A stretch of DNA of 64,000 nt from Chlorokybus atmophyticus. Lineage: Eukaryota; Plantae; Mesostigma and Chlorokybus algae. Shown here piece by piece: positions 25,200 to 56,965 of this stretch. The position numbers were made by a program, and so were the translations under genes. The notes under the pieces were generated by a model, which worked only from the letters and a program-made list of their open reading frames with translations, was not told where the DNA came from and made no database searches. The stretch covers positions 308,158 to 372,157 of the forward strand of contig RHPI01001428.1 in assembly GCA_009103225.1 (NCBI GenBank), in the 5' to 3' direction. Numbering within the stretch: position 1 is the stretch's first letter; the number at the start of each line of letters is the position of its first letter.

Positions 25200-28100
25200 A
25201 GATGGCAACCAGAGCAGTACCTGCCAGCCTGCCAGAGGCTCAATGAGAAGGCTGTGCATGTTGACTAGCACATGAAGGTATGTGATGATTGTTCGGTGCT
25301 TGCACCTGAATTTAACTCAGATTCTGTGTCTTGGTCTCATTAGCATGCAAGGGACGAGACCTCGTATTATGCTGAATGGTCTCCTGTGATTATTGAATTG
25401 CAGCGTAGGCACTCTGAGCAGTTACCAACATCACCTTAGTTAGATTGCCTCACCTGAAGCTCCAGTTCACCAAGCACAAGCAAAATACATAGGGTACCAC
25501 ATTTGTTATGATTAATGTACTTACAATTTGACTTGAGTGTATGACATGGCATAAGAAAGCTCAGCCTGTCATTTCACAAGATTATTATAATTCCATATCA
25601 TATCAACAATGTCAAACACACGCTGAGTTATGTACATACTATTGAAAGTTCCGATCATTTTACTCAAACGCTAATTATACTATTACATGCATGAGATTCA
25701 TGAGCATTATTGATGTGCATTGCAATATGGTATTGCATGAGCTTTATGTGATGCATTGTGGTAAACATCAACACAACCCACCACATGCCTGCATGGTCGC
25801 AATAACATATGAAACAATACACTGATGTATGAGTATTTTTACATGTTAACTTTGGACCATGACATGACATATTGTGTACATAACAACTCTCAGCGTGTCA
25901 TTGCAAATGATTATTTTAATTATAAAATAAATATATATGCATATTCAATGACAATAAGCTTGCAACAAGTGCCATCAAGCATTAAAATATTATTGTACAG
26001 TATGTTTGAAATAACGCAGTGTTTGAAATATATAAATTCTCATTATGAGTAAGTCCGTCAACGACTGGCGGTGCTGTTATATTGATATTAGGATATGCCC
26101 ACCAACATGATACATATGACATAAGGCTAGCAATAATATATATAAATCGGTTGAGCAGGATCCCCGAAGAAGCGCGCAATGTTCATATGTTCCAATTGGC
26201 ATATCATGGATATCACACGTGTATACACGTGTCATATTTGCACGCTTGCACATCAGTCGCCAGTGTAGTGCATACGGCAATAATGTCTATGTAATTGCGG
26301 AATGCTATGTCATGAGCGGCTTATATCATGTTGCATTTGAGCGTAGAGATTGATTAACGTTTTTAGACCAAGTTATATCATCAATGAAGTATATAATTAC
26401 TCGACCTTTTTTATCACATGATTACTGCAAATTACAATTATTTAATCAAATATTTGATACAAATATTTAAGCTCAATACTCATTTACAAATCTATATCAC
26501 TTATTGAATATGCGATTGCGAACTGTCGCAATAGCAGATGCTTGAGGCTTAGCATATGATCATGTAGAATATAAATGCATAATTGGTTTACTGCTTATGT
26601 ACCTCATATCATTACGATAACGATCCTACTACGTTGCAATTAACGTTAAGAACTGCACTTATTTGTGGGTTGGCAATTATGGCTGTATCCGCTAAGTATT
26701 AGTAACGCATGAAAAGTCCTTAACACACTCCTTGCAGCATGCAACGTTTGCAAGTAATCTTCATGAAAATATATGGGAAAACACGTGCGTCAAAAAACCA
26801 TTGTAAAAGTATCATCCAAGATCAATGTCATGTTTTGCATATCGTCATTCAACTGCCACTTTTGCGCCCCATTTTAAACTCAAGGCGTATAAATTCAATC
26901 ACATTTGCATTAAAATCTTTTTGCGGATGTTATGAAAGCTTTTGTGTAACGTATATGGTGATTCTGCAAGTGTCATGTTTATAACATATACTTACGCATA
27001 TAGCGTATATTAACACTTTGTGTACAAAGTATTAATGTTATAATCATAGCAATTACTGTTGTGTATATGTAAACCATGTTAGGATTTGATGTTGTCGCTG
27101 ATTCAATGACGCACGGTACGCGAAGTTGTTATATACGTAAATGTGTATAAATAAAATGTAATCGTATAGTAGAGTTAGTTACAGCATCTGCAGGATAAAG
27201 CGACAACGTACAAAGCTGATTTAACAGCCAAGCTAAATGGAGACACAATGCAAAAAAGGTAATTGCTACACTTGGTTTCACTTTTGTACAACTTTGTTGC
27301 AATAACATAATCGATTACCGCTCCGGTCGATGTAATAGGTTGTATCTAAGTAATTCTCATTTTACATCGACCCGAGCCCGCGGCAATTGACTCCAACCGT
27401 CACTAGACTGCATGTTTGCACTTTGCTTTGCTGCACTTAATGTTGATCTACGATATGAAGTCATCTAAGGCGCAGTGCGGTCGATAGCTATCTGCGATAC
27501 CTGCATATGCAGCCCCCATAAATTTATCTTTGAATTACTCTGCATCAAAGATTGCAGAACAGCAAATTACCACCGATTGCAAAAGAGCCAACTTTATTGC
27601 ATGCAGCTAACAACTGTCTTTAAACATTGTAAAGTGTTAAACATGTTGAAGGGCCGAGTTGGACAAGTATTGATGAAACTACCTATTAGGATGCTAGGAT
27701 CGTGTATACAGCCCTAGGAAGCTAAGACGAGGCAAGAGCAAACTACCACTATAAACTACCAGCTGCATCAAGGTCTGGCTAGGCTAGGCCTGGCCAGGTT
27801 AGAAACTACTAGCTGCATGCATGCATGCATCTTGCGGTATAGCATTGAGCATAGTAAGAAGCTACTACTGTACTGCAGTGATATGTAAGAAAGATGTGGC
27901 AGCCTAGTCCACACGATGATTGAAACATTCAAAATGCACGGTTTAAGAATCCAACCGTAGATTAACGGCTTTCAATGGTGGTTCTTCTACGAGTTACCTT
28001 CTGATCTAACAACTTTTTCAGGTAAGACATCTTTGAATGTAAGAGTACGTGAGACATGTAACAAGGTGGGCAACCCTCTAGATGTCATGCATGTTCCGGG

Positions 28101-30350
28101 GCTCAAGGTGTTACAGAAAGCGAGGTGATATGTAAGTGGTTAATAATGAGTTTTTGAAAGACGCGTTTTGCATGCCTGTCTTTCAATTAAAAATGACAGA
28201 CTTCCACAGCACTCCATTGTTCAGCAGTGTAATCGCTTTCTACCTTGATGTCAATGAAGTATAAATTATGATTCCAGTGCTGCTGCTGCCTGCAACGCGG
28301 TGCAAAAAGCTTGCCTTTCACTGCATGCAGCTCGATGCATTGCAGTAAGCGCAATGGAATGGGGAGACAAAGCAAAAACGAATAAACTTTACTTTTACAA
28401 TTGGGGGATATACATGCAGAGGTAGACTTTACTTTTACTTGATTTTACTCTCTGTGTGACAAGAAAATATAACAACAAATTATTGTATAACACAATCAGT
28501 TTGGAAGGGGACTTTGTTGGACCCTTTTGTTAGAAAACAAAAATGTATCAAATTCAACCAAGAAAGTAATGAAAAGAATGAACAATAGGTTGGCTATTGT
28601 ATCATTTGTAGTACTTGTACTATAATATATACCACAAATCGGACTTTTTTAGCCATCAAGTTGCAAATGTGTTGTACCGATTTATAATCGTGCCATATAT
28701 GGTTGAAAGCGGAATTCCGCGGGCCTACACGAGAAAATCAATGTTAAAATTTATTCAATACCAAGTTGGTCTATGGTGTAGCACCCTTCAATTTTCAAAG
28801 TCATACTAATATTGCTGCACAGCATGACCCACTGGGTAGTTATAAATTAATCATGCTATTTCAAGCATATCATGGCTACCAACTTTGCAGTAGCATTCAT
28901 ACATGCTAGCAAACACATGTTACATTTAATTGTGCACACATTATCAGGTTTGGGATGTTGTTGAAGTAAAACATTATGGCACATTGCGCACCCGCAGGCT
29001 GCATACATAAGTATGTTTTGAAATTTCCACGCCATACTCGTGTGCCAATCAATCCAACAAGTAATTTTCTATGAATATTACGTTGCAAGGGATGCCCTCC
29101 CAGGAGGGTTTTAGTTTTAAAGGTCTATATCTACGGTAGCATGTTACCCAAGTTGCATAAAACAAGTTCTGAATGCAATACCGTTACCGGCCAGCCTAGT
29201 ATTGAGAAGACCAATCATTTAAAAAAAGGATCTTGTAAACGAGTGCGTAAATGTTTAAAAAAAATAAAATAAATGAGATGCCGAGGTAATGTTGTTTAGG
29301 TAGACTTAATGAGTTCAACAATATGCTATGATGTACTTTATGTTTTTTCACACCAATAAAAGTCAAGGAAGGCCGGTTACACCATCACAAGAGATTACAT
29401 CTCGCCTGCGCCTTGTTGAACGAATCATCTTGTACAACAAGCGCTATTTGCATGCTGTTGTTAAGTAATGCTCAATCGTAATGAACACACATGCAAAGCT
29501 TCTCGCACTGATGTAGTCTGGCCCACGCACAAGGTGCTGTAACATGCGTCAACGTCAATAGGTCTCAGTTGTAGCGTTAAGTTCATATAATGGTTGGTTG
29601 CAAATGCTTGCTCACATCTTCAAGATGTGCAATGCAATAGCAATCATTGTCGAGGTCTGAACAGTGGAACATTTGTTGCCTTTGCAGACAATCCACCACT
29701 TCCATCCAACAAGTCCTTGAATATTGTTTTGGCAATGCCGAAATGGCCCCACTTGGCTCAAGAAGGGATGGTGCTGTATTGAGTGGGTGCGGTGTCACCG
29801 TACGCAAAACATGAACACAGCATCTGAGTTAATTTTTACCCGCCGTATGCATGCGTAGTATACGACGAATACCACGTGATTATGTATGGTACGTGCAGCA
29901 ATACGCAAGTTGTTATTCCGATACATGTACACATGCCTATGTATGTTCATTTATGTATGCGGTAAATTTGCTGCACGTACCATCATAATGTGTTTAACGC
30001 ATCGGATGTATATTCGCAATTTGCCGCAACAAATACCAACTTCTGATGGGGTAATTATCATCTTTGATCATGGCCTCTGATAAGTATGACTCTTTTGCAA
30101 TGCCTTGCGCTTGAAATTTTTGACCTCATGCTTCATACATTCATCGCAAACAACAGCACGATCATCACATTTCATTCTTCGAACTCTTAACAATCAATCC
30201 ACATCACGTGTTACTTCAATGCAACCTTTCAACAACATGTTTTCAGTTTAATCATTGTGTATACGCTGTAAAATCTCTCATCGATAGGAGTTGTTTCAAC
30301 CTTAGTCTTACTTAGTAGAAGAGAGGAGGGCTGTATCAATGGTGGGGATC
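25200..30350. other. AT-rich, ORF-poor intergenic island (possibly decayed mobile DNA)
   Basis: Visibly more AT-rich than the flanking genes. It contains only short stop-riddled ORFs and no spliced gene could be built. Confidence 0.65.
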
Positions 30351-30723
30351 TTATGGGGGAATAATCATACGGTACATGGGCTTTGAAGACGGTGAAGACG
30401 ATTGGACGGCGCTAAGCCTGCACTTTCCCAGAGCTGCTTGAATCCTTCAATTAGGAGATTCAACTTGAGGCCCTGCCGACGTGCCTACGTGTCCGTCTCT
30501 CAAAGCATCGTGGACTCCACTCTCGGGGTCACGTGAGGGGGCGTTTTGACCGCGAGAGCAAAATGGCGTCGTCATGATGGCGGTGGGCCGGACCGGACCA
30601 GGCCACGGGCCACGGGGCGGCGGCAGCAGCCTAAAGCGGCAGGCCTAGCCACTGGCTATGCCAAACCAGGCCAAAGCAGACCAGGCCAGGCTAGGCCCAA
30701 GCTAGAGCTGGAGCATAGCTGCG

Positions 30724-31463
30724 ATGGGTCCGCGGCGGCGAGCGGCGGCGGCGGTGAGCCCGTCGTGTTGGTGGAGGTGGTGCGTACTGAGCTTCAGCGC
30801 CGCCGCCTGCCTGGCCGCCTGCGCCCTGGCCCATCCCGAGGCTAACGCCGCCGGCAACGGCAATGCCCGACCGCTGCAGAGGCCGCTTGCACCTGGAGTT
30901 GTGGAAGAAGCCCTCGACCAGCTTGGCATTCTGCACTCTGCACACGTAAGACTGCGGCGCATTTGTACGTGTGCGGAGTGTAGGAGCTCGCGCACACACA
31001 CACACACACACATGATTGGTGTGTGTGTGCGTGCATTCGGGTGTCTCACTCGTGTGTGTCAAGCGTGAGGGTGTCGACGTCTCGTTCTAGCCTGTACACG
31101 CACATATGCACCTGGTGCACAGACACATGGAAGCGGACGTGCACGCGTCTGCAATTCAAGCATTATCAGATGCACAGACAAGAACTCTCACATAGGCGTT
31201 TGTGTGTGTTCTTTTTGTGCGCGCAGACACGCACGTACTCACGCACGTACACACACAAACACACACATAGACACACGTACACACACAGATCTGTACTGAA
31301 CTTGCGCTGTGTTGCTGATCACTGGCCATTGCACAGGTATCGCACTTAGAGCTTCCAGATGAGCACCCCGGCGACGGCACTCTGGCCATACAGGTTCTGC
31401 TAGGCGACGAGCACTACAGCCTGCAGGCAAGGGGCACTTAGCAACTGAGTGCGCGCGCATGCA

Positions 31464-31494
<31 letters not shown>

Positions 31495-34400
31495 CAAAGC
31501 ACTCGTACTCTATGTAATGTCATACTGAGAATCGCAACCCTCTCATTTTGCAGCTGAGCCCGTGTACCGTGCGCACTCCCAACTTCAAGGTGAGCAGAGT
31601 GTCCCTCTGCCTTTCCATCAGACAGTGGTTGATTTACGCATAACAAGACCCCCCCTCAATTTACACTCAACATCAACCACCCACCGTTGCAGTTGCTGGT
31701 GCACGGCGCCGACGGCTCATTGGAAGAGGTGCGTGCGGGCCCCGAGCACAGCGTGTGCGGCACCATCGCCGGCCGCCCGGACAGCCACATACGCGGCGCA
31801 CTGCGCAATGGAGGCCTCCACGCGGGTATGCACACACACACACACGCACACGCACACGCACACGCATACGCATACGCAGTCAACTCCAACTTTTGCTTCT
31901 TGCACAGGTATCCTGCACGACGATGAGTTCTACTACATCGAGCCTCTTCCTGGCCTCAGTCGCGCTCGGCCGGCTCGCATGGGCCGACGCCTGCTCAGGT
32001 ACCACTGTACCCATCATGTTGGTTTGCATCATTGTGGTGTCGGGACAGTGAGACACCAACATGTTGTGCGTGTGGCAGCACGGGGAACACCAACTTGCAC
32101 GCGGTGTACACGGCACGCGATAAGGCCGGGCAAGATGAACATGACCATGACCACGAGCATGCGCACGACCACGGGCGCATGCTTGTTGACGGTGTGAAGA
32201 CACCTCCCGTGCTTTCTGATCCCGCACTACCGGCACCAAAAGACACACCCACCAAGCAACAGCCACAAACCCAATCAGTGAGTATAGTCCAGTGTGTGTG
32301 TACGCATGCGTGCGCGTGTGTGCGTGTGTGCGTGCGTGCGTGCGTGTACATGCGTGCATGTGTATGTGACACAACAACAGTGTTTTACAATAACAACAAC
32401 TATCTCCTCCTCCAGGCCAAGTCTCCCCCCAAGACCTGCGGCGTGACCAACTCCACCCAGAAGGAGGTCGACGAGGGCGGCGCCGACGGTGCCCTCCCCG
32501 ACGGTTGCTTGTGGAACACCGAGCTCGCCATCGACGCCGACTACGCCTACTTCACCTCCTTCGGCTCCAACCTCAACGCCGTCACATCCCAAATACAACT
32601 CGTCATCAACACGATCAACTTGCAATACGCCCGCGACGTCAACATCACATTCACTCTATCGACAATAGTTGTGAGAAGCAGCGCAGCAACCAACCCGTAC
32701 ACGCAGTCCGGTGCTTCAGCGCTACTGAGTCAGTTCAGGTCATACTGGTTGGCGAATCACTGGAATGTCCAGAGAGATGTAGCTCAGTTGTTCACTGGGA
32801 TTGGACTCACGGGTGGTATCATCGGTCTAGCATGGACGGGAGTTGTATGCGATGACCCGTATGGTGGGTACGGCTTCAGTTTAGTTCAGAGTAACTATGA
32901 CGGGACTCTCAAAGATGCGACGGACTTGTCTGCTCACGAGTTGGGTCACACCTTCAATGCGGTTCATTGCGATTGCGCGGGGTCGAACCCGGGACCCTTC
33001 ACGATGAACTCGTGGATCACGGGAGCGAACCGGTTCAATCCCAACGCGGATATCCCCGTGATCAAGTCCTTCGCGGCCTCAGTGGCGTGCTTGCAAGCGC
33101 AGTGTCCGTGGATAACGAACCCACCGGCGCCGCCAGTGACGGTGATGACAAGTGCCCCAACAACAACCTCATCACCACCACCTCCACCTCCACCACCACC
33201 TCCTCCACCACCAATGACGCCACCACCGCCGCCGCCAACACCGCCACCGCCGCCGCCGCCGCCAGCGAGGACGCCCACGCCGAGGATTGAGTGGGGATCG
33301 GATACCGTCACGCAGAGCAACCAGAGCTACTGGAGGACCATATACCTGGAGGTGGGTGGGTGGTTGTGTGGGTGTGTGTATGTGCATGTGCGTGTCGCCG
33401 ACACCGGTTGTGGGTGCTCGCGCGTGCAAGTGTGTGTGTGAGAGAATGTGGGTGTGCGTGCGCGTGCGTAAAGCTCATGCATAGTTGTTGATTGCGGTGT
33501 GATGATCGTGTTGTTTGTGCTGTTGTGCTCAGAACACGTATATCAACCCCGTGGTGATTATGGGTCCCCCGACGAGCAACGGCGTGACGCCCGTTACGGT
33601 GCGCGTCAACCAGGTCACGCCCACCAGCTTCCAGTACCAGCTGCAGAACTGGAACTACCTTGGAAACATTGCTCGGCGAACCGAGAACGTGTCCTACCTC
33701 GTCGTCGAAGCAGGTGCACAGACCTGCAAGCCTTGTGCGTGCGTGCGTGCGTGCGTGCGTGCGGGTGTGAGCCTATTGTTGGTGGGATCAGGTGAAGGGC
33801 TGTGTGCACACGCAGACACGTGTGCATGCCCATGTCCATGCCTTGTAACACACACGCGCGCACGCGCACGCGCACGCGCACGCCCACGCGCGCGCACACA
33901 CACACATACGCATGCACGCACGCACGCATGCGTGTGCTTACTCACATGCTCTCCGACTTGTCTTCACGTGCGATATAATGTGCATCGCTAAAACAAGTGC
34001 CCTACCTGCATCACAGGCAATTGGGTGATTAACGGTCGGACGGTGATGGAGGCCGGTGTCCTCGAGAACGTCACCAACACGTGGGTGACCAAACGCTTCA
34101 CCTACGGGACCTTCAAGTACAGCCCCGCTCTCCTTACGCAGGTGCAAGTGCATAAGCATACCTGAACGCCCAACCCTCCCACCTACCCTCCCAACCCTCT
34201 CACCCCACACCCACACCCACACCAACACCCACGCAGACGATGACGAACCGCGACTCCTCGACAGTCTCCCCCCGCGTGACCGGTTTCGGCTACGCTGGTT
34301 TTAGTATCATGTTGGAGGAGCAGGCCAACCGCGACCCGTTCCACAGCGGGGAGCGGGTGGGTTACGTGGCTTTGACTCAAACGAGCGGGACGGACTTCTT

Positions 34401-35317
34401 GAACGCGTGGAGCTATGTCGCGGGAGCCGTGAAGAATGTGAGTGGAGATGTGGCGAATACGGCGTGGCCAGCGAATGCACCGGCGGCCATGTTCAATAAT
34501 ACGGTGTTGTTGGGAGCTATCACCACAACGAACGCCAACGACGTCAACGCAAAGGTGAGGATGACGCGAGTGCAAGCACACAGCTATGCGTGCGCATACG
34601 CACACACGCACGCACACGCACGCGCACAGGCACAGGCATACGTGCTCACACATGCGCTCGCACATAAATATGCTTGCGCGTGCACACATGCACACGCGCG
34701 CATGCATACGCATGGACAAGTGCGCACACATCAGACTCACCGCTGTCCTGTTTGCGCAGGACCTGCGTACCTCCACCCCTTCCTCCTCCGGTTTCTGCTT
34801 CGATATCGAGTCCGAGCTTTCCGCTCCGATATCCTCCCCACCCGGCGCCGAGACCGTCTCCTACCTCGCTTTAGCCCGCCCCTCCGGCCTCACCATCTCC
34901 GGCACCAACGACGATATCGCGTCCGCCCCCAACTCACTCCCGCTCGGATGGGCCGACGCGGATATCGGCGTCGGGACCTCACCCGCATTTAAGGTACGAG
35001 TTGTTGTTGTTGAAGTTGTGATGTTGTATAGTTGGTGTGGTGTTTGGTTGAAATTAACGTGATGACACTTGACTTCTTTATAGGCTGGGGGTGCGAGCTT
35101 CGACGGGAGGGTGTTTACTGTTGCGGGTTCGGGGACGGATATCTGGGGGACGGGGGATCAGTTCCACTTCGCGTGGAGGAGGAATGTCGGGGACGTGAGC
35201 GTGACGGCCAGGGTGACGAGCATACCAAATACGAATACGTGGGCAAAAGCGGGGGTCATGATACGGTGAGCGTGTAGTGGTGTCAAGTACTGATCGATTA
35301 GTCACTCTGTGTGCGCA

Positions 35318-35349
<32 letters not shown>

Positions 35350-36071
35350 TGTGGGCGTATGGGCGTTTGTGCATCCACACTCGTGACTGCACACACGCGT
35401 GTGTGTACGTCTGCACGTTTTGAATTGCTGTAAGGCACAATAACACATCCCCCCTCACACGCCATCTCTCCCACCACAGCGCGTCCTCGGCAGCCAACTC
35501 CCCTTTCGCCCTAATGGCCTTCTCCGCCGCCAGCGGCACCGCATTTCAATACCGCACAACAGGTTACACAAACAAACAAACAAGCCTGAACCACTCACTG
35601 ATTCACCAACTGATTCACTAACTCACTAAACTCTCCCCTGTTTCCCCCCAGTCGGCGGCACCGCCATCTCCGTCAACGACGCCACTCGCAAGGTCGCTCC
35701 CCTCTGGGTCCGCTTGATCCGATCCTCCTCCTCTGGTCTCGTGACCGCGTTCACCAGTGCGGACGGCCTGGCGTGGAAGCAGCAAGGGGCCCCGGTCGCG
35801 CTGCCGTTCAACGGGACAGGCACGGACGTCCAGTTCGCCGTCGGGCTGGCGGTCTCGGCGCACAACGTCAACAGCGTGTGCAACGCGACGTTCGACACTG
35901 TGGCGGTAGGTGTTGCAAAGTGTGTGTGTGTGTGTCTGTGTGCAGGGAAGTGTGCGTGTACGCGCAAACGTAGACGCGCGTGCGCGCGTATGTGCGTGTG
36001 ATGGCGTGTGTGTGTGTGTGCACGTGTCTCATGGTTGCTTGGCTGTTTTGCAGATTCCTGGCTACTTGTAA
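30724..36071 (+). CDS. Secreted reprolysin-like (metzincin, M12B-like) zinc metalloprotease with Pro-rich linker, three H-type-lectin-like repeats and a C-terminal ConA-like (DUF1349-type) module, about 15 exons
   Basis: Signal peptide (WWRWCVLSFSAAACLAACALA). Prodomain with YYIEPL and a KTCGV cysteine-switch-like motif. Catalytic domain with ELAIDADYAYF, RDVAQLFTG, IGLAWTGVVC, HELGHTFNAVH (32935-32967) and Met-turn TMNS. Poly-Pro linker at 33121-33285. Repeats of the W.T......PVV....S.G..PVTVRV..V....F..../E.VSYLVVEAG type. Terminal GSGTDIWGTGDQFHFAWR...WAKAGVMIR...FQYR...VGLAVSAHN. Ends IPGYL* at 36071. Confidence 0.9.
31464..31492. repeat. Intronic (GT)n microsatellite, representative of many CA/GT and CACG/GTGC tracts in introns at 2.0-2.1, 17.3-18.4, 31-36 and 42-47 kb
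   Basis: Directly visible tgtgtgtgtg runs. Other examples are gcacgcacgc, gcgtgcgtgc and cacacacac tracts. Confidence 0.9.
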
Positions 36072-39131: not shown

Positions 39132-42100
39132 CTAAGCCGGCGAGTCATACGCGGGTGGTGGCGGTACATACTGCTGTCGTTGCACCTGCGGTGCTGCGGG
39201 ACTTCCACTATATGGCGGTGTGGCTGCGACGAGCAGCACCGCGTTGGCGCTATGTCCTCGTCGCCGGCGCACGAGGACGACGGCCACGGCTGCACCCACG
39301 GCAAGGAGGGCCCCGCCGACAGCCGCACCCACGACAATACCCACGGTAGATGAGGAAGTCTTTGTGGACTTTGTGATAGTGGTGGGTGGGGGAGGGGGCG
39401 GGGGAGACTGCGATGGCGTGGGGGATGATGTTGGTGGGGTGGTTGTTGGCGGGGGTGTGCTTGTGGCCGGTGGTGAAGAGGAGGTTGGCTTCGGGGTTTG
39501 GATGACCACGAAGTCGCCCGTGCGCGTGCTCGTGCACGTGACGGATGTTGATGAGGATGAGTTGACGGCGATGCCTGCGCTCGAGAGTGTCCCGTTGGCC
39601 GCGACGACAGTGTAGCACTGCATTGTCTGAGTTTGCGTGTTGACAAGAGCCGAGTCCACGGGTACACGCACGCGGTACGTGCCACCCGCCTTGGGAACGA
39701 CATTCACCTCAAGACCCGTGGCGGAGTCCGTGAAGTGAACCTGAAGCACGCCCGACACGAGTGTCCCGCCAACAGGAAGAGTCTTGACCGACCTCGCCAC
39801 GAGTACGGGGTCCTGCACGTACGTAAGTTGCATGTCGAGGGTGGTAGGACAAGTCCCATTGGCGTTGCTGCTCGGACACGTGTAACCCGTGACGGGGGTG
39901 TCGAACTTGGCCAACGCCGTGTTGACGGCGAGGAGCTGACGACGGCGTCGTGAAGGCGTGCTGGCAACATTGAGGAGGAATTGTGCGCCGAGGAGGCCCT
40001 CGAGGGTGTTGCGGTCGACGAGGAGGACGATGATGTCCGAGGAGACCACGACGGGAGCTTCGTCTGGGGAGGCGTCTTTGAGTAAAGAGTCTCCAAGTGA
40101 TTGTAGAGCTGTGTCGAAGCGAGCACGCTCTTGCGTGGAGGCCAACAAGGTGAGGCTGTCGGTGGAGTTGGAAGAGCTCGCGTTGTACGTGTACGTGCCG
40201 AGCATGTTGCCGAGCACGCTCAGGACGGTGTTGCCAACGTCGCTCGTGACCGCGTCCGTCGACGAAGACAACCTATCCGTCACGAACACAATTGTGCGCA
40301 TGGCCGCATCACGTGCACCTGCGTTGATCTCACCGGCGTCGCCGCCCGTGACTTCAACCAATGCACCGATGATGCCGACGAGGTTTACGTTGGCGCCGGA
40401 GCTCGCCGCGCCACTCGTGGCGGTAGAGTATAAAGCCACAGCGAGCGTGGCGCGGATCTCCGCGTTGCTCGTGGCGTTGGTGGTGGTGTTGGCGTTGAGG
40501 GCGGAGCCCGCGCGAAGCACGTTGGCAAGGGTGGCGGCGGTGTCTTGAACAGCCTGCGAGGAGGTTAGGGCAGAGAGTGCGGACGTGATGTCCACGACGT
40601 ACGGGTGAACATGCACGGATGCCGTGACACAAGTCTCGGCCCCGTATGCATCCGACACGCAGACGTAACACGTGCGCGTGTAGTTGTCGTCCGGCATGCC
40701 CGCAGGGAGCGACGTGTATGTGTATGTGCGCTGCTCCCAGTTCATCACGAGCGGGTAGCGCAGACCCGAGGTGAGGTAATACCCAAACTCGTACGTAAAC
40801 GTGCCACTATTGTCGGTCCATCCATTAGCCGTTGCCGTGAACTCATTCCCGCCAAAGGCCAAACCATCAATCCGATCGAAGGAGAAACAATCCGTCGCAT
40901 TGGCAGCGTTGCAGAAAGGCTTCTGATTCATCGCGATTGTAGTATACGCCTGCGCGCTGGCCCCACTCTCTACATCTGTCATGGTGAGAGTGAAGTCATA
41001 GCTCACGCCACTCTGCAGCGCAACAGACAACACCACGAGGGTCTTGGACACGTTGGACGTGGCTTGGATGGACGCATCACCAAGGTCCAACTTGTCACAC
41101 GTCCAGAGGTATGTCACGGGTCTAGACGAGGTCAACAGGGCCTTCAAGCGTAAAGGCGTGCTCGGGTTGAAGTACTTTGGACACGTTACTCCCGTCCCGC
41201 AGAGTGGTATGATCTGTCCCGAGGGCGTGTTGTCCGTCCCGAGCACCGCGTGGACCTCCGTGACAGTGGCGGACTCGCGCTCGCAGTTACCCGACGCGTC
41301 GCAGTCGCCCTTTGTTGCCACTAAAGTGATGACGTACGTGGTCCCGCCGCTCATCGCGTTGGACATGATGTCGTAGGTCGACGCGTGAGACTCGGGAGAG
41401 TATTGGAGAGTTGAGTTGGGCTCGGTCACGCCGAGGAAACAAGGCAACTCGTCGGAGGTGATGCAACTCCAGTGGAACTGGAAGGCTGCGAGAACACAAC
41501 ACAAGCAGGTGAGCTGCAGGACAAAAGACATGGCAAGATAGCAACTTTCTGTCTACACGTAATGACAGCAAGAATGCAAACTTAACGTACATCCGCAACG
41601 CTACGCAAACAACAAGCACAGCAGCAACAACAACAACAAGTCCCACGCAGTACGCATGTACACAGCTTAGTGCGTTGTTGCACCAACTCAGCACTCACGT
41701 TCGATCTCGTTGTTGGGATCATCGGGGTCGAGTGAGTTGGCTCCCGAGAGCGTGATCGGTTGATCCACACGTGCGTCACGGTTGCCACCATCAATGACAG
41801 CCAGTAACGGTGATGCCATCACCGTCAGGTCCACTCTCAGACTAGCACTGCCATCCGCAACACCCTCAAGACTAGCCGTGAGTGTTAACGTGTATGTTGT
41901 GCCGGGCACGAGGCCGGCCGTGCCGGGAGCCACGTAAAGGTCTTTGGAGGCGAGGGCCGCGGCGGGGAGGGAGAATGTGGGCGAGGATGCAGCGAAGGAC
42001 CACGCGTACTGCATGCGGAGGTTGGAGGCGGTGCTTGAGGATATTGTCGCAGCCGCGCAGAGAGCGGATTGAGCGTCGACGCTGGTTTGGACGTATACGC

Positions 42101-48100: not shown

Positions 48101-51100
48101 GTCGCGTAGTAGCGATGGGTCGTCGAGAGTCTTGCGGACCATACCGACACACTGCAAGGCGAGAACCCATCGTAAGCATCGTGTACACGACTCGTGCGAC
48201 ACGCAACATGAGCGTGAGAGTGTCTCCTCACTTTTGTGGGCGTGGTGTTGTTCCATGTGGGGCAGGTGGCGTTCAACTTAAGTCTCATGTTGTCCGGCCC
48301 GGCATTGGCGTAGTCACGGATGAAGCGATTGGCATCATCCGCGCAGCGGTGACAGCTGTCGGTGCAGTTGGGTGTTGGGCCAACACCCGGAGCGGGAACA
48401 GGACCCGCGCCAGGACCCGGCCCGTACGTGATGTTGCTGTGGCACATGTTGTTGTATCGGCAAACGGACACGCCGCCGCGGGACAGTTGTGGGGATAGGC
48501 AGCCCTCCGCACCCGACCAACCGTCACACACGTTGCGCACTGGTACACAGGTAGTTAGCGCTGTTGTTGTTGTACAAGTATGCATAAGCCAAGATAATGT
48601 TAGCTTGTGCCACCAACTCTACCTGTTGTGCATCGGTCATTGGTTCTCTTGTCCAGGCCGCAGCCAAGGAAGTCGTAACCAGTGCACTCGCGCGTGCTTA
48701 GTGTGGAACAAAGGTCTGTGCAACAAGAGCGTCAGCAGCTGGCATCATATTATGCATGCGTTGTTGATCCTGCGGCCTGGTGTAAACTGCTGGAGGCATT
48801 GACACGAGTGTGGGATTGAGTGGGACCTACCATTAGCTGGCAGGCATTGGCCGCCCCATGTGCAATTGGCAAGCGGACAGTCTGTGATGGATGTGTACTG
48901 GCAGCACCAGTCTTGCCTGGAGTCGCACCCTGGATTGGAACACAGACTTGTTAGTAGCAGTACAATACACCTTGCTTGGCTTTCCGTTCTGTATCAGCAT
49001 ACACAGTATCTGTATCTCTGCTGCACCTGTGTTGTTAAGGTACGAGTTGGGGCTCGGGGCCGGTGCAATGGGCGGGCATCCTGCAGGTCAGAATGGAGGT
49101 TGTCTTTGGTGCAAGTGCAATACGTGATTGCCACAGCGGCATCATCCTGGCTTTGTTACTACTGACTCACCTTGGCAGAAAAATCGGGCGCACACCTCCA
49201 CCTGCGATCGCACGGGGCCAATGTCGCGTGATCGATTGTAGAACGCGAGGACGAAGTCGCACGGGACTGTGGTAAGGAGGTTCGACCCTGCCAGGCAGCT
49301 ATCCCTTGCCAGAGAGATATTGACCTGCCCATTGTCGATCGCGTTGGCTAAGCTCGCGCACATCCCGCAACCCTGATAATCGCATCCTCCGGAACCCTGA
49401 TTGGGTCCTGGTCCCGGGTTGGGTCCCGGGTTGGGGCTCCCAGGTGCTTGTGGTGCGCAGAAGGCACGGCGGGTACATGCCGGCGAGGGGCAGTCTTGAG
49501 GAGAGTACTGCGGGCAGGTGTTGGAGCTGTTGCGGCAGATGGCGTCGCCGCTGCCGACAGGCAACGAGGCTGCCGGGTGTGCCACGTCCCACACGCAAGG
49601 TGACCCAGCGGTCGTGCACGCTGACGAGGAATTATACTTAAGGCAGAAGTCTGCAACACATACACACCACGCCTTGTGAGGCCACATTAACCGCCACCAA
49701 ACAAGAAATTGTCTAAAAGCCGGAACAAACACTATACAAACAAGCACAGGTTGCTGACACACAAGATATCAACCGTATTACATAGATACGCGCAGTCTTA
49801 CCATCCCCCAGCGACCGGCACTCGTCTCTCCACACGCATCCGCTATCCTCGCCGCACCGCAGAAGCGTCTCCCTCTTCCCACATTGGCTGTTGTCTTGTC
49901 CCGGGGGGGCTCCCATGTTGGGACTCGGAGGCTGGGAACCAGGGCCTTGGCCAGGACCTTGGGGAGGACCTTGGCCAGGACCCTGGGGAGGAGCTTGGCC
50001 GGGAGCTTGGCCGGGGCCTTGGCCGGGGCAGGCGAAGCGTGGCCGGCAGACTGGCAGAGGGCTCCCCACGGATGTGCAGGAGGAGGGGTTGGTGGATGCC
50101 ATGCAGGGGTTGGAGACTGTTGCAAGGAGGGACAATTGAGATGTGTGTGTAACGTAAACATGCATTTTATTTGAAAGTAAAAGAGCGTCTTGAACGTACG
50201 GCTTGTGCATTGCGTGGAACGGTCGGACCACTGGCAGCCGAGGTTGGATGGGCAGGTCGTTGAATCCGCGCCAAGCGAGCATACGTCTGCGCACACCACA
50301 ATCAACGTCAATCGTTTTAGCGTCTAAACGTGAACCTGAAAAGCAGAAAGCAAGACGAGTTCAAGTACCAAAGGCCATGTCGCAGCCAGCATAGAGCTGT
50401 TGCTCGATGGGGCAGGCGTGAGGGTCAGCTTGCCGGCAGCCCTGGCGTGGGAGGCAGACGGGGACACCGCGGCTGTCGGTGAGGCCCATGCACGCCGCCA
50501 GCGAGCTGCCCGCCAGCTGGCACACGTCCACTACTGACTGGCAGGAGCCATCATTGCTGTTGTTGTTGCCGCCGCTGGTGTTCTGCTTTCTCCAGACGCA
50601 GCCCAGGTGCGCGTCGCAGTCCTTGTCTGTGCGGGCACTGCCGCAGACATCTATTGCAAACAAAAGTCAGCCCTCAAGGAATGGTGCACTGCTAATAGTC
50701 ACGTTGGCCTCTTGTTGTTTCTTACCCCATGCGAGTTGGCAGCCCGTCTGCCATGCGCACCCCTCAGCCTTGGCGCAGTTGGCTGGTGCAGCAATGGCGC
50801 AGCACGTGTTGTTGTTGCCTTGGCCCGGGCCGGGTGCAGCAGCAGCGTCTGTGCTAACACCTGCCGCCGCCGGTGTGCGCGTTGGTGGGGGAGTCCCGCC
50901 CTGCTGCTGGGGAGCTGGGGCACCACCTTGTTCACCTGGACTTGGAGGACCACCTTGGTTGGGACCTGGAGGACCGCCCTGGTTGGGATCTGGAGGACCA
51001 CCTTGGGTTGGGCCTGGCGGACCACCCTGGTTGGGACCTGGAGGACCACCTTGGGTTGGGCCTGGCGGACCACCCTGGTTGGGACCTGGGGGACCACCTT

Positions 51101-52440
51101 GGGTTGGGCCTGGCGGACCACCCTGGTTGGGACCTGGGGGACCGCCTTGGGTGGGGCCTGGAGGGCCGCCTTGGGTGGGACCTGGCGGGCCGCCTTGGGT
51201 GGGGCCTGGCGGGCCGCCTTGGGTGGGACCTGGCGGGCCGCCTTGGGTGGGACCTGGCGGGCCGCCTTGGGTGGGACCTGGAGGACCACCTTGGGTTGGG
51301 CCTGGCGGACCACCCTGGTTGGGACCTGGGGGACCGCCTTGGGTGGGACCTGGAGGACCGCCTTGGGTGGGACCTGGAGGACCGCCTTGGGTGGGACCTG
51401 GAGGACCGCCCTGGTTTGGACCTGGTGGGCTACCCTGGTTGGGCCCTGGAGGACCTCCTGAGGCTGGCCCCGGGGGTCCTTGGGTTGGAGCAGGACCGGG
51501 TCCTCCAGGTGGCCCGGGGACGGGACCGCCACTTGCAGGAGGCGCTCCGGCATTGAAGCAGGTGGTTGTGTCATAGCAAACGCCTTGCCAGCTGCATACA
51601 CCTGCCCCCGTTGCGTCGCGGTTGCCCAAGCAGAGCGTGCGGTTAAGCGCAGTGATGGCGCACACGTCCACACCTGCGTGCATGACGCAGCGAGGGGTGT
51701 GGTGGGTGCTGTGGTGTAGCTACGGGTTTGTTTGAGCTCTTATGAAGCGCATCTTTGCATGATATGTGCAGATGTGGTAGCAGTTGTTGGCATGCGCGGG
51801 CGACAGCACCCCCCCCCCCNNNNNNNNNNCCCCCCCCCCCCCAGCCCCCACCCCTCAACACCCACCCACCCACCAGTGCACCTTATGTTGAATAGGTGCT
51901 ACGGAGTTTGAGTGCAGCTTGTGTAAATATGCATGCAAGCATTAACGACCCCCCACCCCACCCCCTCCCACGCGCCCCCCCTTTCCCTACCCTATCATAT
52001 CTCCAACATGGTAGTTACAACACAGAACTAGTCACCTCATGATAGTAGAGGTACTAGTAGTGGTGGTGGTAGTAGTGGTAGTAGTGATAGTGGTAGTGAT
52101 AGTAGTAAAAGCCACCATAGTGCATGCACATCTAACTCTCGATCACCCCACTCACGTCTGTTGCAGGCCGTCCCGCCCGCTGAGTTGGTGTCCCAGGTGC
52201 ATCCCAGGCGCCCGAGGCAGGTGCCGGGCTGCTTCGCATCGGCGCAAGGGTCTGTCACAAAGAGAGAGCATACGTCATCCAGGTGAGTACCGAACTTATC
52301 CTCTCTCCCAGTCATCATATAGGAGGTGATGCGTTTCAGTTGCACTCAGCTCAAATTACCTTTGGGGGCTGTGCAGATCTCACTCCAGCCACAGATTGTG
52401 TTTGCTCTGCATTTGGCAGCGTCCAGTGGCCCGCAAGCAT
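39132..52440 (-). CDS. Giant type-I membrane protein: Cys-rich PSI-like repeats, Gly/Pro repeats, four saposin-like domains, REJ/PKD region, GAIN/GPS-like region, TM helix, short PPxY tail
   Basis: A continuous spliced reading runs from DACGPLDAAKCRANTICGW (acceptor 52441) through many CxxxxCxW modules and four saposin-like units ending in C..L..C or the variant CARFFC. REJ-type segments follow (FTIDGSYS, YSVELVV, LLAVIDGGNRDARVDQPITLSGANSLDPD, FQFHWSC, YLWTC, FTYEFGY, CYVCVSDAYGA), then VTCTSTRTGDFVV, a Thr/Pro stalk, TM GIVVGAAVGGALLAVGAAVAVVLV, RRRR and PPPPAY. The stop is at 39132. The true start is not found; a candidate first exon lies at 53098-53156. Confidence 0.85.
50955..51458 (-). 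repeat. Coding 24-bp minisatellite, about 21 units encoding GGPPGP[T/N]Q
   Basis: The translation of ORF 50667-51683 shows about 21 consecutive octapeptides, and 21 x 24 bp = 504 bp matches the span. Confidence 0.95.
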
Positions 52441-54961
52441 CTGCAACCACAATGGTATGAAGTAATGGACAACAACAGAGATTACACCAATCAAGCCAAG
52501 GACGCACTGTCACCAGAAACTAGCATGAAGGAGGGCAGTGGGGGTTGCATGCGTGCTTGAAGACAGTTTGCACAATGGACACATAGTGACTTTGAAACTG
52601 TATGATAGGTCAGTAAAGTGGTATGACCATCAGCTGTTAGACTGACTGAGCCTGGCAGGTCATGTCGTTACCACGAGCCTGAACTTGCTAAGAACAATTG
52701 CAGACAATTGTGGCGGAGCTTATAGGTTATGAGCTTCGTAGCAATGCACGAAAACCATGCGATGTATGCAAGATGAAGTCACTTCGTTTGCATAAAGCAT
52801 GACCGCGAATATCGACGTACAGAGTCAAGTCAATTCAAGCGTGCTTTCTCGTGATGACCATCTCGTTGACTAATTAGTCAAAATCAGTAAGTATCATCCC
52901 CCTTTCTAACATATCCCCCCCCACCCCACCCCCCCCACCCCACCCCATGCACGTAGGCCAAAGACAACATTGGCATGCACGCATGTGCATGTACGTGCAA
53001 GCAGAGTCGCGTGTTTGAATTACCGCACACGCGTGCACACACACACACATGCTTGCGCAGAAGCACACAAACTCCTACATGAACAAGCAACACTGACCTT
53101 GGGCGGAGACTGCGACAGTCAGTAATGCCAGCCCGCACAACACCAGCGCCAGACATCGCTTACTTATGCAATCGCCCATAAGGACGCGCTCAACGCCCAT
53201 CGTGGATGGTAAGCAAGTGTTGTACTCTTATTGCTACCAGGCTAGTTCATATATCTTAGGGCGAATGAAATAATGTGCTGTAATATGTAGTAATCGGAAA
53301 ATGTGCTGCAGTAGCAGCGGCAGTGATACACTAAACTAGCGAGTTGAATCAGAGGATGAGAGCCTAGGATTGTACACAGCTTCAGCCCCTCAACCAGCGG
53401 TTGAATCAGTTGTACAGTGTTGTGTAGCCAAACAGATCAGCAGAGGAGTGGTGAGATTGAAGCGCAAAACGACTTAGAGCCGTATCACCACTTGCTGTTT
53501 TCCACAAGCTCCCATCCCACTCCACCGCAGCCCAAGGCATAGTCAAGTCATACTGCCATACGCCCCGTTGCTTGACGTGGTTAAGCAGCTCGCCGCCTTC
53601 TGCTGTGCGAGCTCCACCTTTGAATCAGTCAGAGGCTGGAGGTTTGTAGGGTTGCTTCTGGCGATCAGATATCCACATTGTTGAGGGGCGGGCAATGCGT
53701 GCGTGTACCCTGTCTCCCCTTGACCGTTGTTGGTGGCAGACCGGCCGTTTTGAAAAAGCGCAGTCTGTGTGCCCGTTTCTCCTCTACTTCAGAGTTATGT
53801 TGAGGCAAGCAATGTGAGTTGAAGCAAACTGTGCAGTCGGATCGCCCGAGGGGGGCCCATCACCCCATCCATGTGGTAAAATTAGGGCATGCGCAACGTA
53901 GTTACTGTATAATTACGCCCTTGGCTCCCAAGACTTGGTATCTGCCTCTAATGCATAAGCCGGTGGATCAGATGGCGTTCCTTTTCAGGCTGAAAATTTC
54001 AGCACTATATTTGGCGTGTGTGCAAGGGGAGTCACGTGACGGCGCCCAGTGTGTCGCACACTGCGCGAGGCTGCTGCAGCGCGCGCCCGGGCATGTCGCT
54101 CTCGCTCTCTCTCTCTCTCGCTCTCTGTCGCTCTCTGTGCGCTAGCAGAGTCGTGTCGCGGTTGTCACTGACAACTTGTCAGGTCAGAATATTGCTCGAC
54201 GTCAAGGGCACTGTTCATATCTGTCTCTAATTCACTGACTACCTACCCATCACTGTTTACAAAAGAAGCAAAGCACAGCATGCATATGGTATAGCAAAGG
54301 GGCCAATAGTATAGCACACAACAACCAGCCAACATAACAATGCATATAAAAAGCTGGTGCTGCCCGCATGATGGGCCAAGTTTTGAAGTATAAACGTTCA
54401 GTACCGAAGTTTGTTTCATTTTGCAACCTCGCATGTTTTATATGTTGTATTTGTATAGCATAAGCAAGAACGATTATGTGCTGAGACGAAATTATCTTGT
54501 TTATGTTATTTGCATAATTAATGTTGATTATAATGATTATATCGTCAATCACACAGCATGTAACACAGCAGTATCTTGCATGCTGACAAGTATATCGTTA
54601 TGCAACATTAAAACTTTTGTGGGTGTCCTTTCGTGTCGTTAACAGCCACTAAAAATGTGACAACCCTAATAATGGACATTGCCACCACCGCTGTACAATG
54701 TTGCCACCGCCTTCTTGTGGACAGCTTTTATGAAAATTAGGCATGCATTTTATATTGCTAAACATAGTGTACTCTCATGTCATGGTGGCAAATGTTTTCC
54801 ACCATAAAGTATGGCATGATAGTGTGGTCCCCCCAATTACTACACCCGCAATCTTGTACTGTGGCAGTACGCGGAACACACTTTGCAGGGTACGTTGCAC
54901 AGTATAACACACGAGGCAATGCTACGCTGCGCATTGATACAACCCCCCTGTTCGCCCCCCC

Positions 54962-55823
54962 NNNNNNNNNNNNNNNNNNNNNNNNNNNNNNNNNNNNNNN
55001 NNNNNNNNNNNNNNNNNNNNNNNNNNNNNNNNNNNNNNNNNNNNNNNNNNNNNNNNNNNNNNNNNNNNNNNNNNNNNNNNNNNNNNNNNNNNNNNNNNNN
55101 NNNNNNNNNNNNNNNNNNNNNNNNNNNNNNNNNNNNNNNNNNNNNNNNNNNNNNNNNNNNNNNNNNNNNNNNNNNNNNNNNNNNNNNNNNNNNNNNNNNN
55201 NNNNNNNNNNNNNNNNNNNNNNNNNNNNNNNNNNNNNNNNNNNNNNNNNNNNNNNNNNNNNNNNNNNNNNNNNNNNNNNNNNNNNNNNNNNNNNNNNNNN
55301 NNNNNNNNNNNNNNNNNNNNNNNNNNNNNNNNNNNNNNNNNNNNNNNNNNNNNNNNNNNNNNNNNNNNNNNNNNNNNNNNNNNNNNNNNNNNNNNNNNNN
55401 NNNNNNNNNNNNNNNNNNNNNNNNNNNNNNNNNNNNNNNNNNNNNNNNNNNNNNNNNNNNNNNNNNNNNNNNNNNNNNNNNNNNNNNNNNNNNNNNNNNN
55501 NNNNNNNNNNNNNNNNNNNNNNNNNNNNNNNNNNNNNNNNNNNNNNNNNNNNNNNNNNNNNNNNNNNNNNNNNNNNNNNNNNNNNNNNNNNNNNNNNNNN
55601 NNNNNNNNNNNNNNNNNNNNNNNNNNNNNNNNNNNNNNNNNNNNNNNNNNNNNNNNNNNNNNNNNNNNNNNNNNNNNNNNNNNNNNNNNNNNNNNNNNNN
55701 NNNNNNNNNNNNNNNNNNNNNNNNNNNNNNNNNNNNNNNNNNNNNNNNNNNNNNNNNNNNNNNNNNNNNNNNNNNNNNNNNNNNNNNNNNNNNNNNNNNN
55801 NNNNNNNNNNNNNNNNNNNNNNN
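54962..55823. other. Assembly gap (N run) flanked by poly-C tracts
   Basis: A run of N. Smaller gaps occur at 1159, 51820-51829 and 57602. Confidence 0.99.
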
Positions 55824-56965
55824 GCCCCCCTTTCACCACGTGTATTTAGAGAAGTGTCGAATGCCCACATGTATATCATTTCACATGAGATGCCACATGT
55901 ATGCAGGCACTCGGGTGCTGTTTATTTTTGCTCGCATGAGCTGCCAGAGGGCCGCGGCTATGGCATCAGGAAGTCCTATTGCTATCAGATGCTAATGATC
56001 ATTAAGTTGTTATTATGGTTTTGGTACTACAAGCCGCTTGTTGTTATTTAATCATTGATAAACACTTGATAGGCTCAGATCCTATCAACGCACGCGTACG
56101 TCTGCTTAAGCAAAATCAATCAAAGCATATTGTGATTGACTTTTCAGGCTCGTCAACACCGCAGACATGTGGTCTTAAGACAGCAAGGTTGGTAAAACCG
56201 GCTGACAATACTCGAGACATGTGAGCTGTAAAATCGGCGCCTTAACCACTAGGCCATGGCAGCAAAAATCGCTGCCATAGGGGGAGCCACACGTGCCTCA
56301 TACATGTCCCATACCATATTCGCTACATGAGCAAAGCTTCCAGTGGCAGGGGTCGAGCAGTTGTTATTATTATTGTCATGCATGCTCTTGCACGCCCGAG
56401 GCTGACCTTTACCTCTGTTTTCCTAATGCGCTTTGCAACTTGCCTAACCATTGATATTTGCTCCTTACTTGTTACATATCACCCTGATGCTTGAGGGTCT
56501 TGTGTACATGAATGTACATAATGGGAGATGCACACATGCATAGACAACATAACTTGTCTATGGCATGCCTCATACCCCACACAACAACATCTGGACACGG
56601 TCAACACAACCACCAGGCCAACAAACACTCAGGTTACCAACTGCCTCGCTACTCCTACCAATATACCCCATCCCCGTCAGTTGTGCATAGGCTTTCCAAT
56701 CACAAGCACAAGCAAGATGCACAGGCAAGCACACACGGCCACCCACACAACCAGGCACAGGATAGGTTGCTGTAAAGACAGCGCACAGACAAACTATGTG
56801 CTGTAGCTAAGTGCGTGAAGTGTGCAGCGCGAGAGAGGTTTGTTGTGGGGCCAAGGAGGAGGGGATGCAACAGACCTATGTGCACAGGTGCCAGGGTCAG
56901 GCTGAGGTCTTGTTGTCGACGACAGCAACAATAACAGCAGCAGAAGGAGGTTGTGCATGGCAGCA

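Follow-up and report, generated by a model that had tools for sequence, protein, structure and literature searches.

A candidate secreted M12B (adamalysin-type) zinc protease with a probably bacterial core in the streptophyte alga Chlorokybus atmophyticus

We analyzed a gene of the alga Chlorokybus atmophyticus that lies in a stretch of 64,000 nucleotides (contig RHPI01001428.1 of assembly GCA_009103225.1, forward-strand positions 308,158 to 372,157; hereafter the window). Positions 30724-36071 of the plus strand form one protein-coding gene of 15 exons, with 1033 codons plus TAA and 3102 coding nucleotides. In the explanation that we consider probable, this is a nuclear Chlorokybus gene for a secreted, latent zinc endopeptidase with a bacterial-type core and an added tail. 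The core, consisting of a prodomain and an M12B catalytic domain, would have reached an ancestor of the alga in the distant past, through horizontal transfer from a family that occurs in bacteria, chiefly Planctomycetota. It would then have acquired a host gene style and spliceosomal introns, of which five lie in the prodomain, and would have been joined to an extensin-like poly-proline linker, divergent repeats and a DUF1349-type ConA-like module. All positions follow the window numbering; splice phases and frames were read exon by exon, and domain searches were run on single exons.

The whole coding region (30724..36071, plus strand) was traced from reading frames and splice sites. The start codon at 30724 is the first ATG downstream of an in-frame TAG (30703-30705), and the stop codon TAA occupies 36069-36071. 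No stop was found inside any of the 15 exons, and the exon phases are mutually consistent. The 14 introns measure 80-391 bases and abound in CA/GT repeats; 13 are of the GT-AG type and one (intron 2) is GC-AG. Six of the 14 junctions (2, 3, 4, 11, 12, and 13) are backed by abutting, collinear matches to bacterial profiles. Because successive exons are matched in order at abutting profile positions, the splice junctions are supported, the GC-AG intron included. Exon 7 (32416-33351, plus strand; 312 residues) encodes not only the whole catalytic domain but also the linker and the first part of the repeats, and the protease and its tail are therefore physically one reading frame. On these grounds, an intact, real gene with the architecture described here is very likely. 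At third codon positions across 30724-36071, G and C were also seen to alternate blockwise, with a skew of -0.87 to +0.64 per 40 codons.

The catalytic domain, which lies within exon 7 (32509..33108, plus strand), was identified from Pfam, PDB matches and a structure model. Reprolysin_5 (PF13688) matched exon 7 with an E-value of 3.9e-23 and 83.1 bits against a cut-off of 27, and the Reprolysin_3, Reprolysin_4, Reprolysin_2 and Reprolysin models likewise exceeded their cut-offs. The best PDB sequence matches were snake venom metalloproteinases (BaP1, 1.3e-13; 54 bits). An AlphaFold model of the domain, built on 24 aligned sequences, reached a predicted local distance difference test (pLDDT) value of 87 and a predicted template modelling (pTM) score of 0.87. 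Foldseek returned 163 PDB matches with E <= 0.001 for this model, and the best 50 were all adamalysins, ADAMs or TACE. Template modelling (TM) scores, normalized by target, were 0.74-0.86 against single-domain snake venom metalloproteinases and the catalytic chains of ADAM-8/33, with root-mean-square deviations mostly of 2.1-3.7 A. The identity to the animal adamalysins among those best 50 of 163 matches was 16-27%. As modelled, the catalytic domain has an adamalysin fold.

The residues expected of a working active site are in place. In an alignment with 23 bacterial relatives, H174, E175, H178 and H184 of the zinc motif HELGHTFNAVH (32935..32967, plus strand), the following C185, and the Met-turn methionine M197 in FTMNSW (33004..33006, plus strand) were invariant, and the three conserved cysteines C145, C185 and C225 were all kept. 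The bacterial signature HELGHNW.A.HC.C ... TMN has its counterpart in the alga as HELGHTFNAVHCDC...FTMN, with T-F in place of N-W. Judged by these residues, the protein is a predicted zymogen-type zinc endopeptidase of M12B.

The N-terminal part is divided among six exons. Exon 1 (30724-30945, plus strand) carries a signal peptide predicted by hydropathy only (residues 1-36, ...ALA|HP; 30724..30831, plus strand); its N-terminus is basic (RRR), and ALA|HP follows a hydrophobic core that spans residues 19-35 and has Kyte-Doolittle values of about 2. The prodomain exons span 31337..32277 on the plus strand (exon 2, 31337-31426; exon 3, 31554-31589; exon 4, 31693-31825; exon 5, 31908-31998; exon 6, 32079-32277) and were recognized with a bacterial M12 profile built from 36 full-length bacterial proteins. 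This profile was matched in order by exon 2 (profile positions 51-73), exon 3 (76-87), exon 4 (88-131), exon 5 (135-149), exon 6 (157-171) and exon 7 (170-403); the individually significant matches among these were those of exon 4 (E 1.3e-10) and exon 7 (3.6e-103). The collinearity indicates that a unit which runs uninterrupted in bacteria is now divided by five introns. The identity of exon 4 to bacterial prodomains is 37-52%, and by sequence comparison the algal prodomain is homologous to the bacterial one.

Three short elements of the prodomain region deserve mention. The sequence PKTCGV at the start of exon 7 (32428..32445, plus strand) could, by analogy with ADAMs, be a cysteine switch; in the alignment of the bacterial family, its Cys falls on C169, which is nearly invariant. 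An Arg-rich insert at the end of exon 5, SRARPARMGRRLL, is lacking from the bacterial profile; it contains MGRRLL, of which GRRLL (31982..31996, plus strand) is a possible processing site. A His/Asp-rich stretch in exon 6, DEHDHDHEHAHDH (32134..32172, plus strand), is likewise unmatched by the bacterial profile and could bind metal.

Downstream of the catalytic domain, exon 7 continues into a Pro-rich linker (33112..33291, plus strand), in which 34 of the 60 residues are Pro, with runs of 13, 6 and 8. About 300 residues of divergent beta-type repeats follow (33292..34894, plus strand), encoded by the tail of exon 7, exon 8 (33533-33713), exon 9 (34017-34141), exon 10 (34237-34554) and the first part of exon 11 (34760-34993). 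Exon 8 matched H_lectin (PF09458) with an E-value of 0.009 and 16.5 bits, below the cut-off of 24, and H_lectin was also the top Atlas lead for the repeats (0.84), which counts as a lead only. In Smith-Waterman comparisons against shuffled sequences, exons 10 and 11 aligned in the expected repeat register (p 0.011). This was the only pair so supported; exon 8 gave no BLASTP match to exon 10 or exon 11. Pfam and NCBIfam contained no above-cut-off match for single exons of the repeat region, exons 9 to 11 did not match H_lectin, and PDB sequence searches, two viral-contig scans and a word search with the exon 10 region returned no relatives of the repeats. We tentatively describe the repeats as H-type-lectin-like from these alignments.

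The C-terminal module is better defined (34907..35905, plus strand; end of exon 11, exon 12 at 35084-35265, exon 13 at 35480-35562, and exon 14 at 35652-35905). Exon 12 had 424 relatives in metagenome contigs, 48-64% identical and lying in uninterrupted open reading frames (ORFs), and exons 13 and 14 matched the same metagenome loci directly downstream and in frame. A profile of the bacterial modules was matched collinearly by the end of exon 11 (positions 554-575, E 0.004), exon 12 (579-638, 1.7e-33), exon 13 (641-666, 1.9e-7) and exon 14 (668-742, 2.9e-20). The bacterial ORFs with this module are mostly 600-1600 residues long and often carry it in tandem; 29 of 40 carrier ORFs matched DUF1349 (PF07081; best 1.5e-24), and DUF1349 was the Atlas lead for the algal module as well. 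The assignment to PF07081 is indirect, made through the continuous bacterial counterparts because the single exons are too short for Pfam. By this profile comparison, the C-terminal module is a DUF1349-type ConA-like sandwich of bacterial type, divided by three introns. Companion domains in the bacterial carriers include GH43, GH44, CBM6, F5/8 type C, fucosidase, Laminin_G_3, PA14 and a type IX secretion system (T9SS) sorting tail. Some bacterial proteins at metagenome loci L099 and L117 have five tandem DUF1349-type modules per ORF. Exon 15 (36054..36071, plus strand), placed by splice sites and frame, supplies the last five codons (IPGYL) and TAA.

The protease and the tail were not found together in the bacterial relatives searched. 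BLASTP, phmmer and tblastn searches with exons 8-14 detected neither tail module in 257 bacterial relatives of the protease or in 85 loci (80 planctomycete-dominated genome loci and five assembly loci). By Pfam, the tails of the best 120 bacterial relatives instead contained fn3, Ig, Big_1, dockerin and PKD domains. Because the tail modules are absent from the bacterial relatives, the fusion of protease and tail most likely arose in the alga. A first-pass annotation of the window, made from the letters alone, had described a signal peptide, prodomain, metzincin site, poly-Pro linker and about 15 exons here, and all of these were found where it had placed them; the motifs that it quoted (RDVAQLFTG, AHELGHTFNAVHCDC, and FTMNSWITGANRF) were read correctly. 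It had also recognized two kinds of C-terminal modules, which correspond to the DUF1349-type ConA-like module and the divergent repeats. Its description of both as lectin-like agrees with the ConA-like module, but the H-type-lectin reading of the repeats stays below threshold.

The relatives of the core point to bacteria. An HMMER search with the catalytic part against 1.84 billion cluster representatives yielded 4523 relatives, of which 360 reached E<=1e-30. Identity was 40-54% for the best 150 and none was closer, which indicates that the library holds neither the algal protein nor a close ortholog. The named relatives were all bacterial (Phycisphaerales, Planctomycetota, Verrucomicrobia), often annotated as 'M12 family metallo-peptidase', and no non-bacterial name occurred among the best 120 matches of a profile word search; two cluster look-ups supplied few names. 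When prokaryotic species were scanned with one genome each, 362 relatives were present among the candidates, and the best 80 loci were kept. Of the 79 that entered the tree, 70 carried a Planctomycetota label, with both classes represented; the remainder were one bin each of Lentisphaerota, Gemmatimonadota and Cyanobacteriota, two of Pseudomonadota, and four without a label. The contigs of the relatives that we inspected were gene-dense and bacterial. Two short matches that begin at the catalytic domain were considered as eukaryotic exons and rejected, being genes cut by contig ends on gene-dense bacterial contigs. The bacterial likeness amounted to 197 bits at about 50% identity, whereas the animal likeness was 54 bits at about 25%. 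This gap in similarity, the shared prodomain and signature, and the breadth of the family in bacteria favour transfer, and from these comparisons we judge the core to be probably of bacterial origin. In freshwater Planctomycetes, M12B Reprolysin_4-like enzymes have been described as secreted endopeptidases docked on extracellular scaffolds (PMC6461901).

Taken as a protein, the gene product would work as follows. The signal peptide would export the zymogen from the cell, and the prodomain would block the zinc site until it is cut off. The putatively O-glycosylated proline rod would space the protease from the tail, the lectin-like tail would retain the protease on carbohydrate-rich wall or mucilage, and the tethered protease would cleave matrix glycoproteins. 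The putative sugar binding of the module is supported solely by the company that it keeps with carbohydrate-active enzymes in bacteria, and we regard tethering to the matrix through the tail as an even prospect.

The substrate could be the alga's own or foreign. The first-pass annotation had proposed a wall or matrix lysin; a lysin that attacks the wall of the alga itself, for example in the release of spores or daughter cells, is a rather doubtful form of the explanation. A feeding or defence protease fits the evidence at least as well. According to this alternative, the gene and its bacterial origin are the same, but the enzyme would digest foreign proteins or the surfaces of mucilage-dwelling bacteria or fungi, and the tail would bind foreign glycans. 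Consistent with it, the planctomycete relatives are secreted endopeptidases (PMC6461901) that digest external protein, and some bacterial relatives end in dockerin, Ig and fn3 domains; so are the bacterial DUF1349-type modules that ride on enzymes degrading external polysaccharides. The extensin-like linker, in contrast, fits a matrix-resident protein, and the present evidence does not separate own from foreign substrates. We give this alternative a serious but less than even chance. A far more speculative proposal, which we think improbable, is that the proline rod, small beta repeats and DUF1349-type module form a cassette of bacterial parts that is placed on several unrelated catalytic domains as a common extracellular-matrix address label. 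As part of that proposal, the protease family could trim proline rods that bear GGR(R/K)LL tags in matrix proteins of the alga, its own prodomain having GRRLL.

Several observations weigh against the explanation that we prefer, that of a secreted, latent protease with a transferred bacterial core. The splicing is backed by homology, not by RNA. The zinc motif reads HELGHTFNAVHC, with Asn at the Gly and Cys at the Asp of the classical HExxHxxGxxHD; because that Cys is invariant in the bacterial subfamily, the departure is by alignment a subfamily trait and not a defect. DUF1349 has no established ligand, the repeats are unassigned to a family, and sugar binding by the tail is an inference. Most metagenomic relatives of the core carry no taxon label. 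The alga's proteome is missing from the libraries, and those of its relatives perhaps are too, so that the absence of eukaryotic members is weakly tested. Finally, the trees give the alga no supported position. Trees of 237 rows and of 80 rows (named genomes) were obtained by a quick tree search, and the algal branch was 1.13-1.19 in the two, against a median of 0.40-0.45. In the 237-row tree, the algal end branch was 1.19 against a median of 0.4, and no strongly supported set included the alga. Its weak partners there (Shimodaira-Hasegawa-like approximate likelihood ratio test [SH-aLRT] 82) were the rows with the greatest divergence, a pattern suggestive of long-branch attraction; in the 80-row tree, the alga stood beside the midpoint root with an SH-aLRT support of 53. 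Both trees lack labelled eukaryotic sequences and an outgroup, and a nested position is therefore indistinguishable from a sister position.

Some bins were found at odd places in the trees. A protease from a 'Cyanobacteria' bin, in the pair of loci L079 and L077, was almost identical to a Phycisphaerales-bin protease, and two 'Alphaproteobacteria' bins (L008 and L040) fell inside planctomycete groups. These are probably binning errors in metagenome-assembled genomes and not transfers.

The same trees bear on the possibility that there was no transfer at all. M12B enzymes occur in animals and fungi, and the algal gene might have come down by vertical inheritance from an old eukaryotic M12B gene that most lineages have lost, its likeness to planctomycete proteins reflecting a shared ancient family or a transfer in the reverse direction. 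Within the sampled family, the alga branches off deep and without supported nesting, as vertical inheritance would have it, and the libraries sample eukaryotes poorly. Yet the alga is 40-54% identical to the bacterial members against 16-27% to animal adamalysins, it has in common with the bacterial family the prodomain and the HC.C...TMN signature, and it has no ADAM-type propeptide or disintegrin domain. Moreover, the family covers two planctomycete classes, Lentisphaerota and Verrucomicrobia, with the alga as the sole eukaryote seen here. We consider vertical inheritance unlikely. Because of the introns, the eukaryotic neighbours and the likeness to a bacterial family, horizontal acquisition followed by domestication is the best reading. 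The first-pass annotation had arrived at the same reading; the bacterial-family core, the introns and the neighbours uphold it, but the supported nesting that it had looked for in trees was not obtained. The transfer, if real, is old, as judged from the long branch, the 14 introns and the host-like composition.

Less likely still is that the gene is unexpressed or mis-modelled, being a decaying copy or two neighbouring genes read as one. The comparison with bacterial profiles gave no homology support for exons 1 and 15, and the splicing has no RNA support. However, no stop or frameshift interrupts the 3102 nucleotides and 15 exons, the residues invariant in the family are all kept, the exons abut in profile coordinates, and the catalytic exon itself extends through the linker into the repeats.

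The gene is located in ordinary eukaryotic DNA, as indicated by flanking long ORFs on the minus strand with an MPLKIP domain (3859-4713), a REJ domain (39135-41531) and a Sec7 domain (62503-63339); its guanine plus cytosine (G+C) content resembles that of the flanks. Bacterial contamination assembled into an algal scaffold, which could be suspected because the closest relatives are bacterial and which the first-pass annotation had already thought unlikely, has a negligible chance and is ruled out by the intron structure, since 14 spliceosomal introns cut domains that are continuous in bacteria and both the neighbours and the G+C content speak for host DNA.

Elsewhere in the window, an AT-rich stretch at 26000-30000 (G+C 0.38-0.39), which contains no long ORF, lies a short way upstream of the gene; it could represent intergenic DNA or an old repeat. 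A run of N from 54963 to about 56000 is an assembly gap; the apparent G+C of 0.26 and the long 'ORFs' that appear at 54758-56051 on either strand are artefacts of it. A tandem repeat at 50938-51459 has a 24-base unit with a 96-base higher order, about 22 copies and 86% matches.

To our knowledge, land plants have no adamalysin-type proteases. We found no paper describing a reprolysin/adamalysin-type protease in a streptophyte alga, and the Chlorokybus genome paper mentions neither transfer nor proteases. What is new here is that a known protease family occurs in a host where it was not expected, and in a new domain combination; the family, fold and chemistry themselves are known and ordinary. 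If the transfer is true, an early-branching streptophyte took up a planctomycete secreted protease and added introns, a plant-style proline rod and lectin-like modules, and the gene would be a clear worked example of bacterial genes rebuilt into eukaryotic extracellular-matrix proteins. Little is known of the wall and mucilage biology of this alga, and the gene also offers a concrete candidate for how its matrix is processed.

Among known systems, the closest are the planctomycete-type M12 proteases (Reprolysin_5/_4/_3; Phycisphaerae and Planctomycetia), whose prodomain and catalytic domain are homologous to those of the alga at 40-54% identity. Both have the CG motif before the catalytic domain, HELGH..A.HC.C, the TMN Met-turn and the cysteines, and both have a secreted multi-domain layout. 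The alga differs from them by its 14 introns, its long poly-proline linker, and its His/Asp-rich and Arg-rich prodomain inserts, and its tail of repeats and DUF1349-type module occurs in 0 of 257 relatives. The first-pass annotation had called the catalytic style planctomycete-like, as opposed to ADAM or M11, and the Reprolysin_5 match, the bacterial relatives and the absence of disintegrin and Peptidase_M11 matches bear this out. With animal adamalysins (snake venom metalloproteinases and ADAMs; MEROPS M12B), the alga has in common the fold, the zinc histidines, the catalytic Glu, the Met-turn and, as predicted, latency through a prodomain. However, the identity is 16-27%, the alga has Asn and Cys for the Gly and Asp of HExxHxxGxxHD, and, unlike ADAMs, no exon gave a Pfam match to Pep_M12B_propep, disintegrin or a Cys-rich domain. 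The gametolysin of Chlamydomonas and Volvox (M11) and other algal wall lysins belong to a different metzincin family from the algal M12B protein, and Peptidase_M11 (PF05548) was not matched in the Pfam scan of the exons; the likeness to gametolysin is one of functional analogy only, each being a zinc metalloprotease of a green alga that has a prodomain and is, in Chlorokybus by prediction, secreted. As for the tail, the algal module is 48-64% identical over exon 12 to that of bacterial DUF1349-carrying enzymes and collinear with it over exons 11-14. In bacteria, this module sits on GH43, GH44, fucosidase, CBM6 or Laminin_G_3 proteins, whereas in the alga it sits on a protease.

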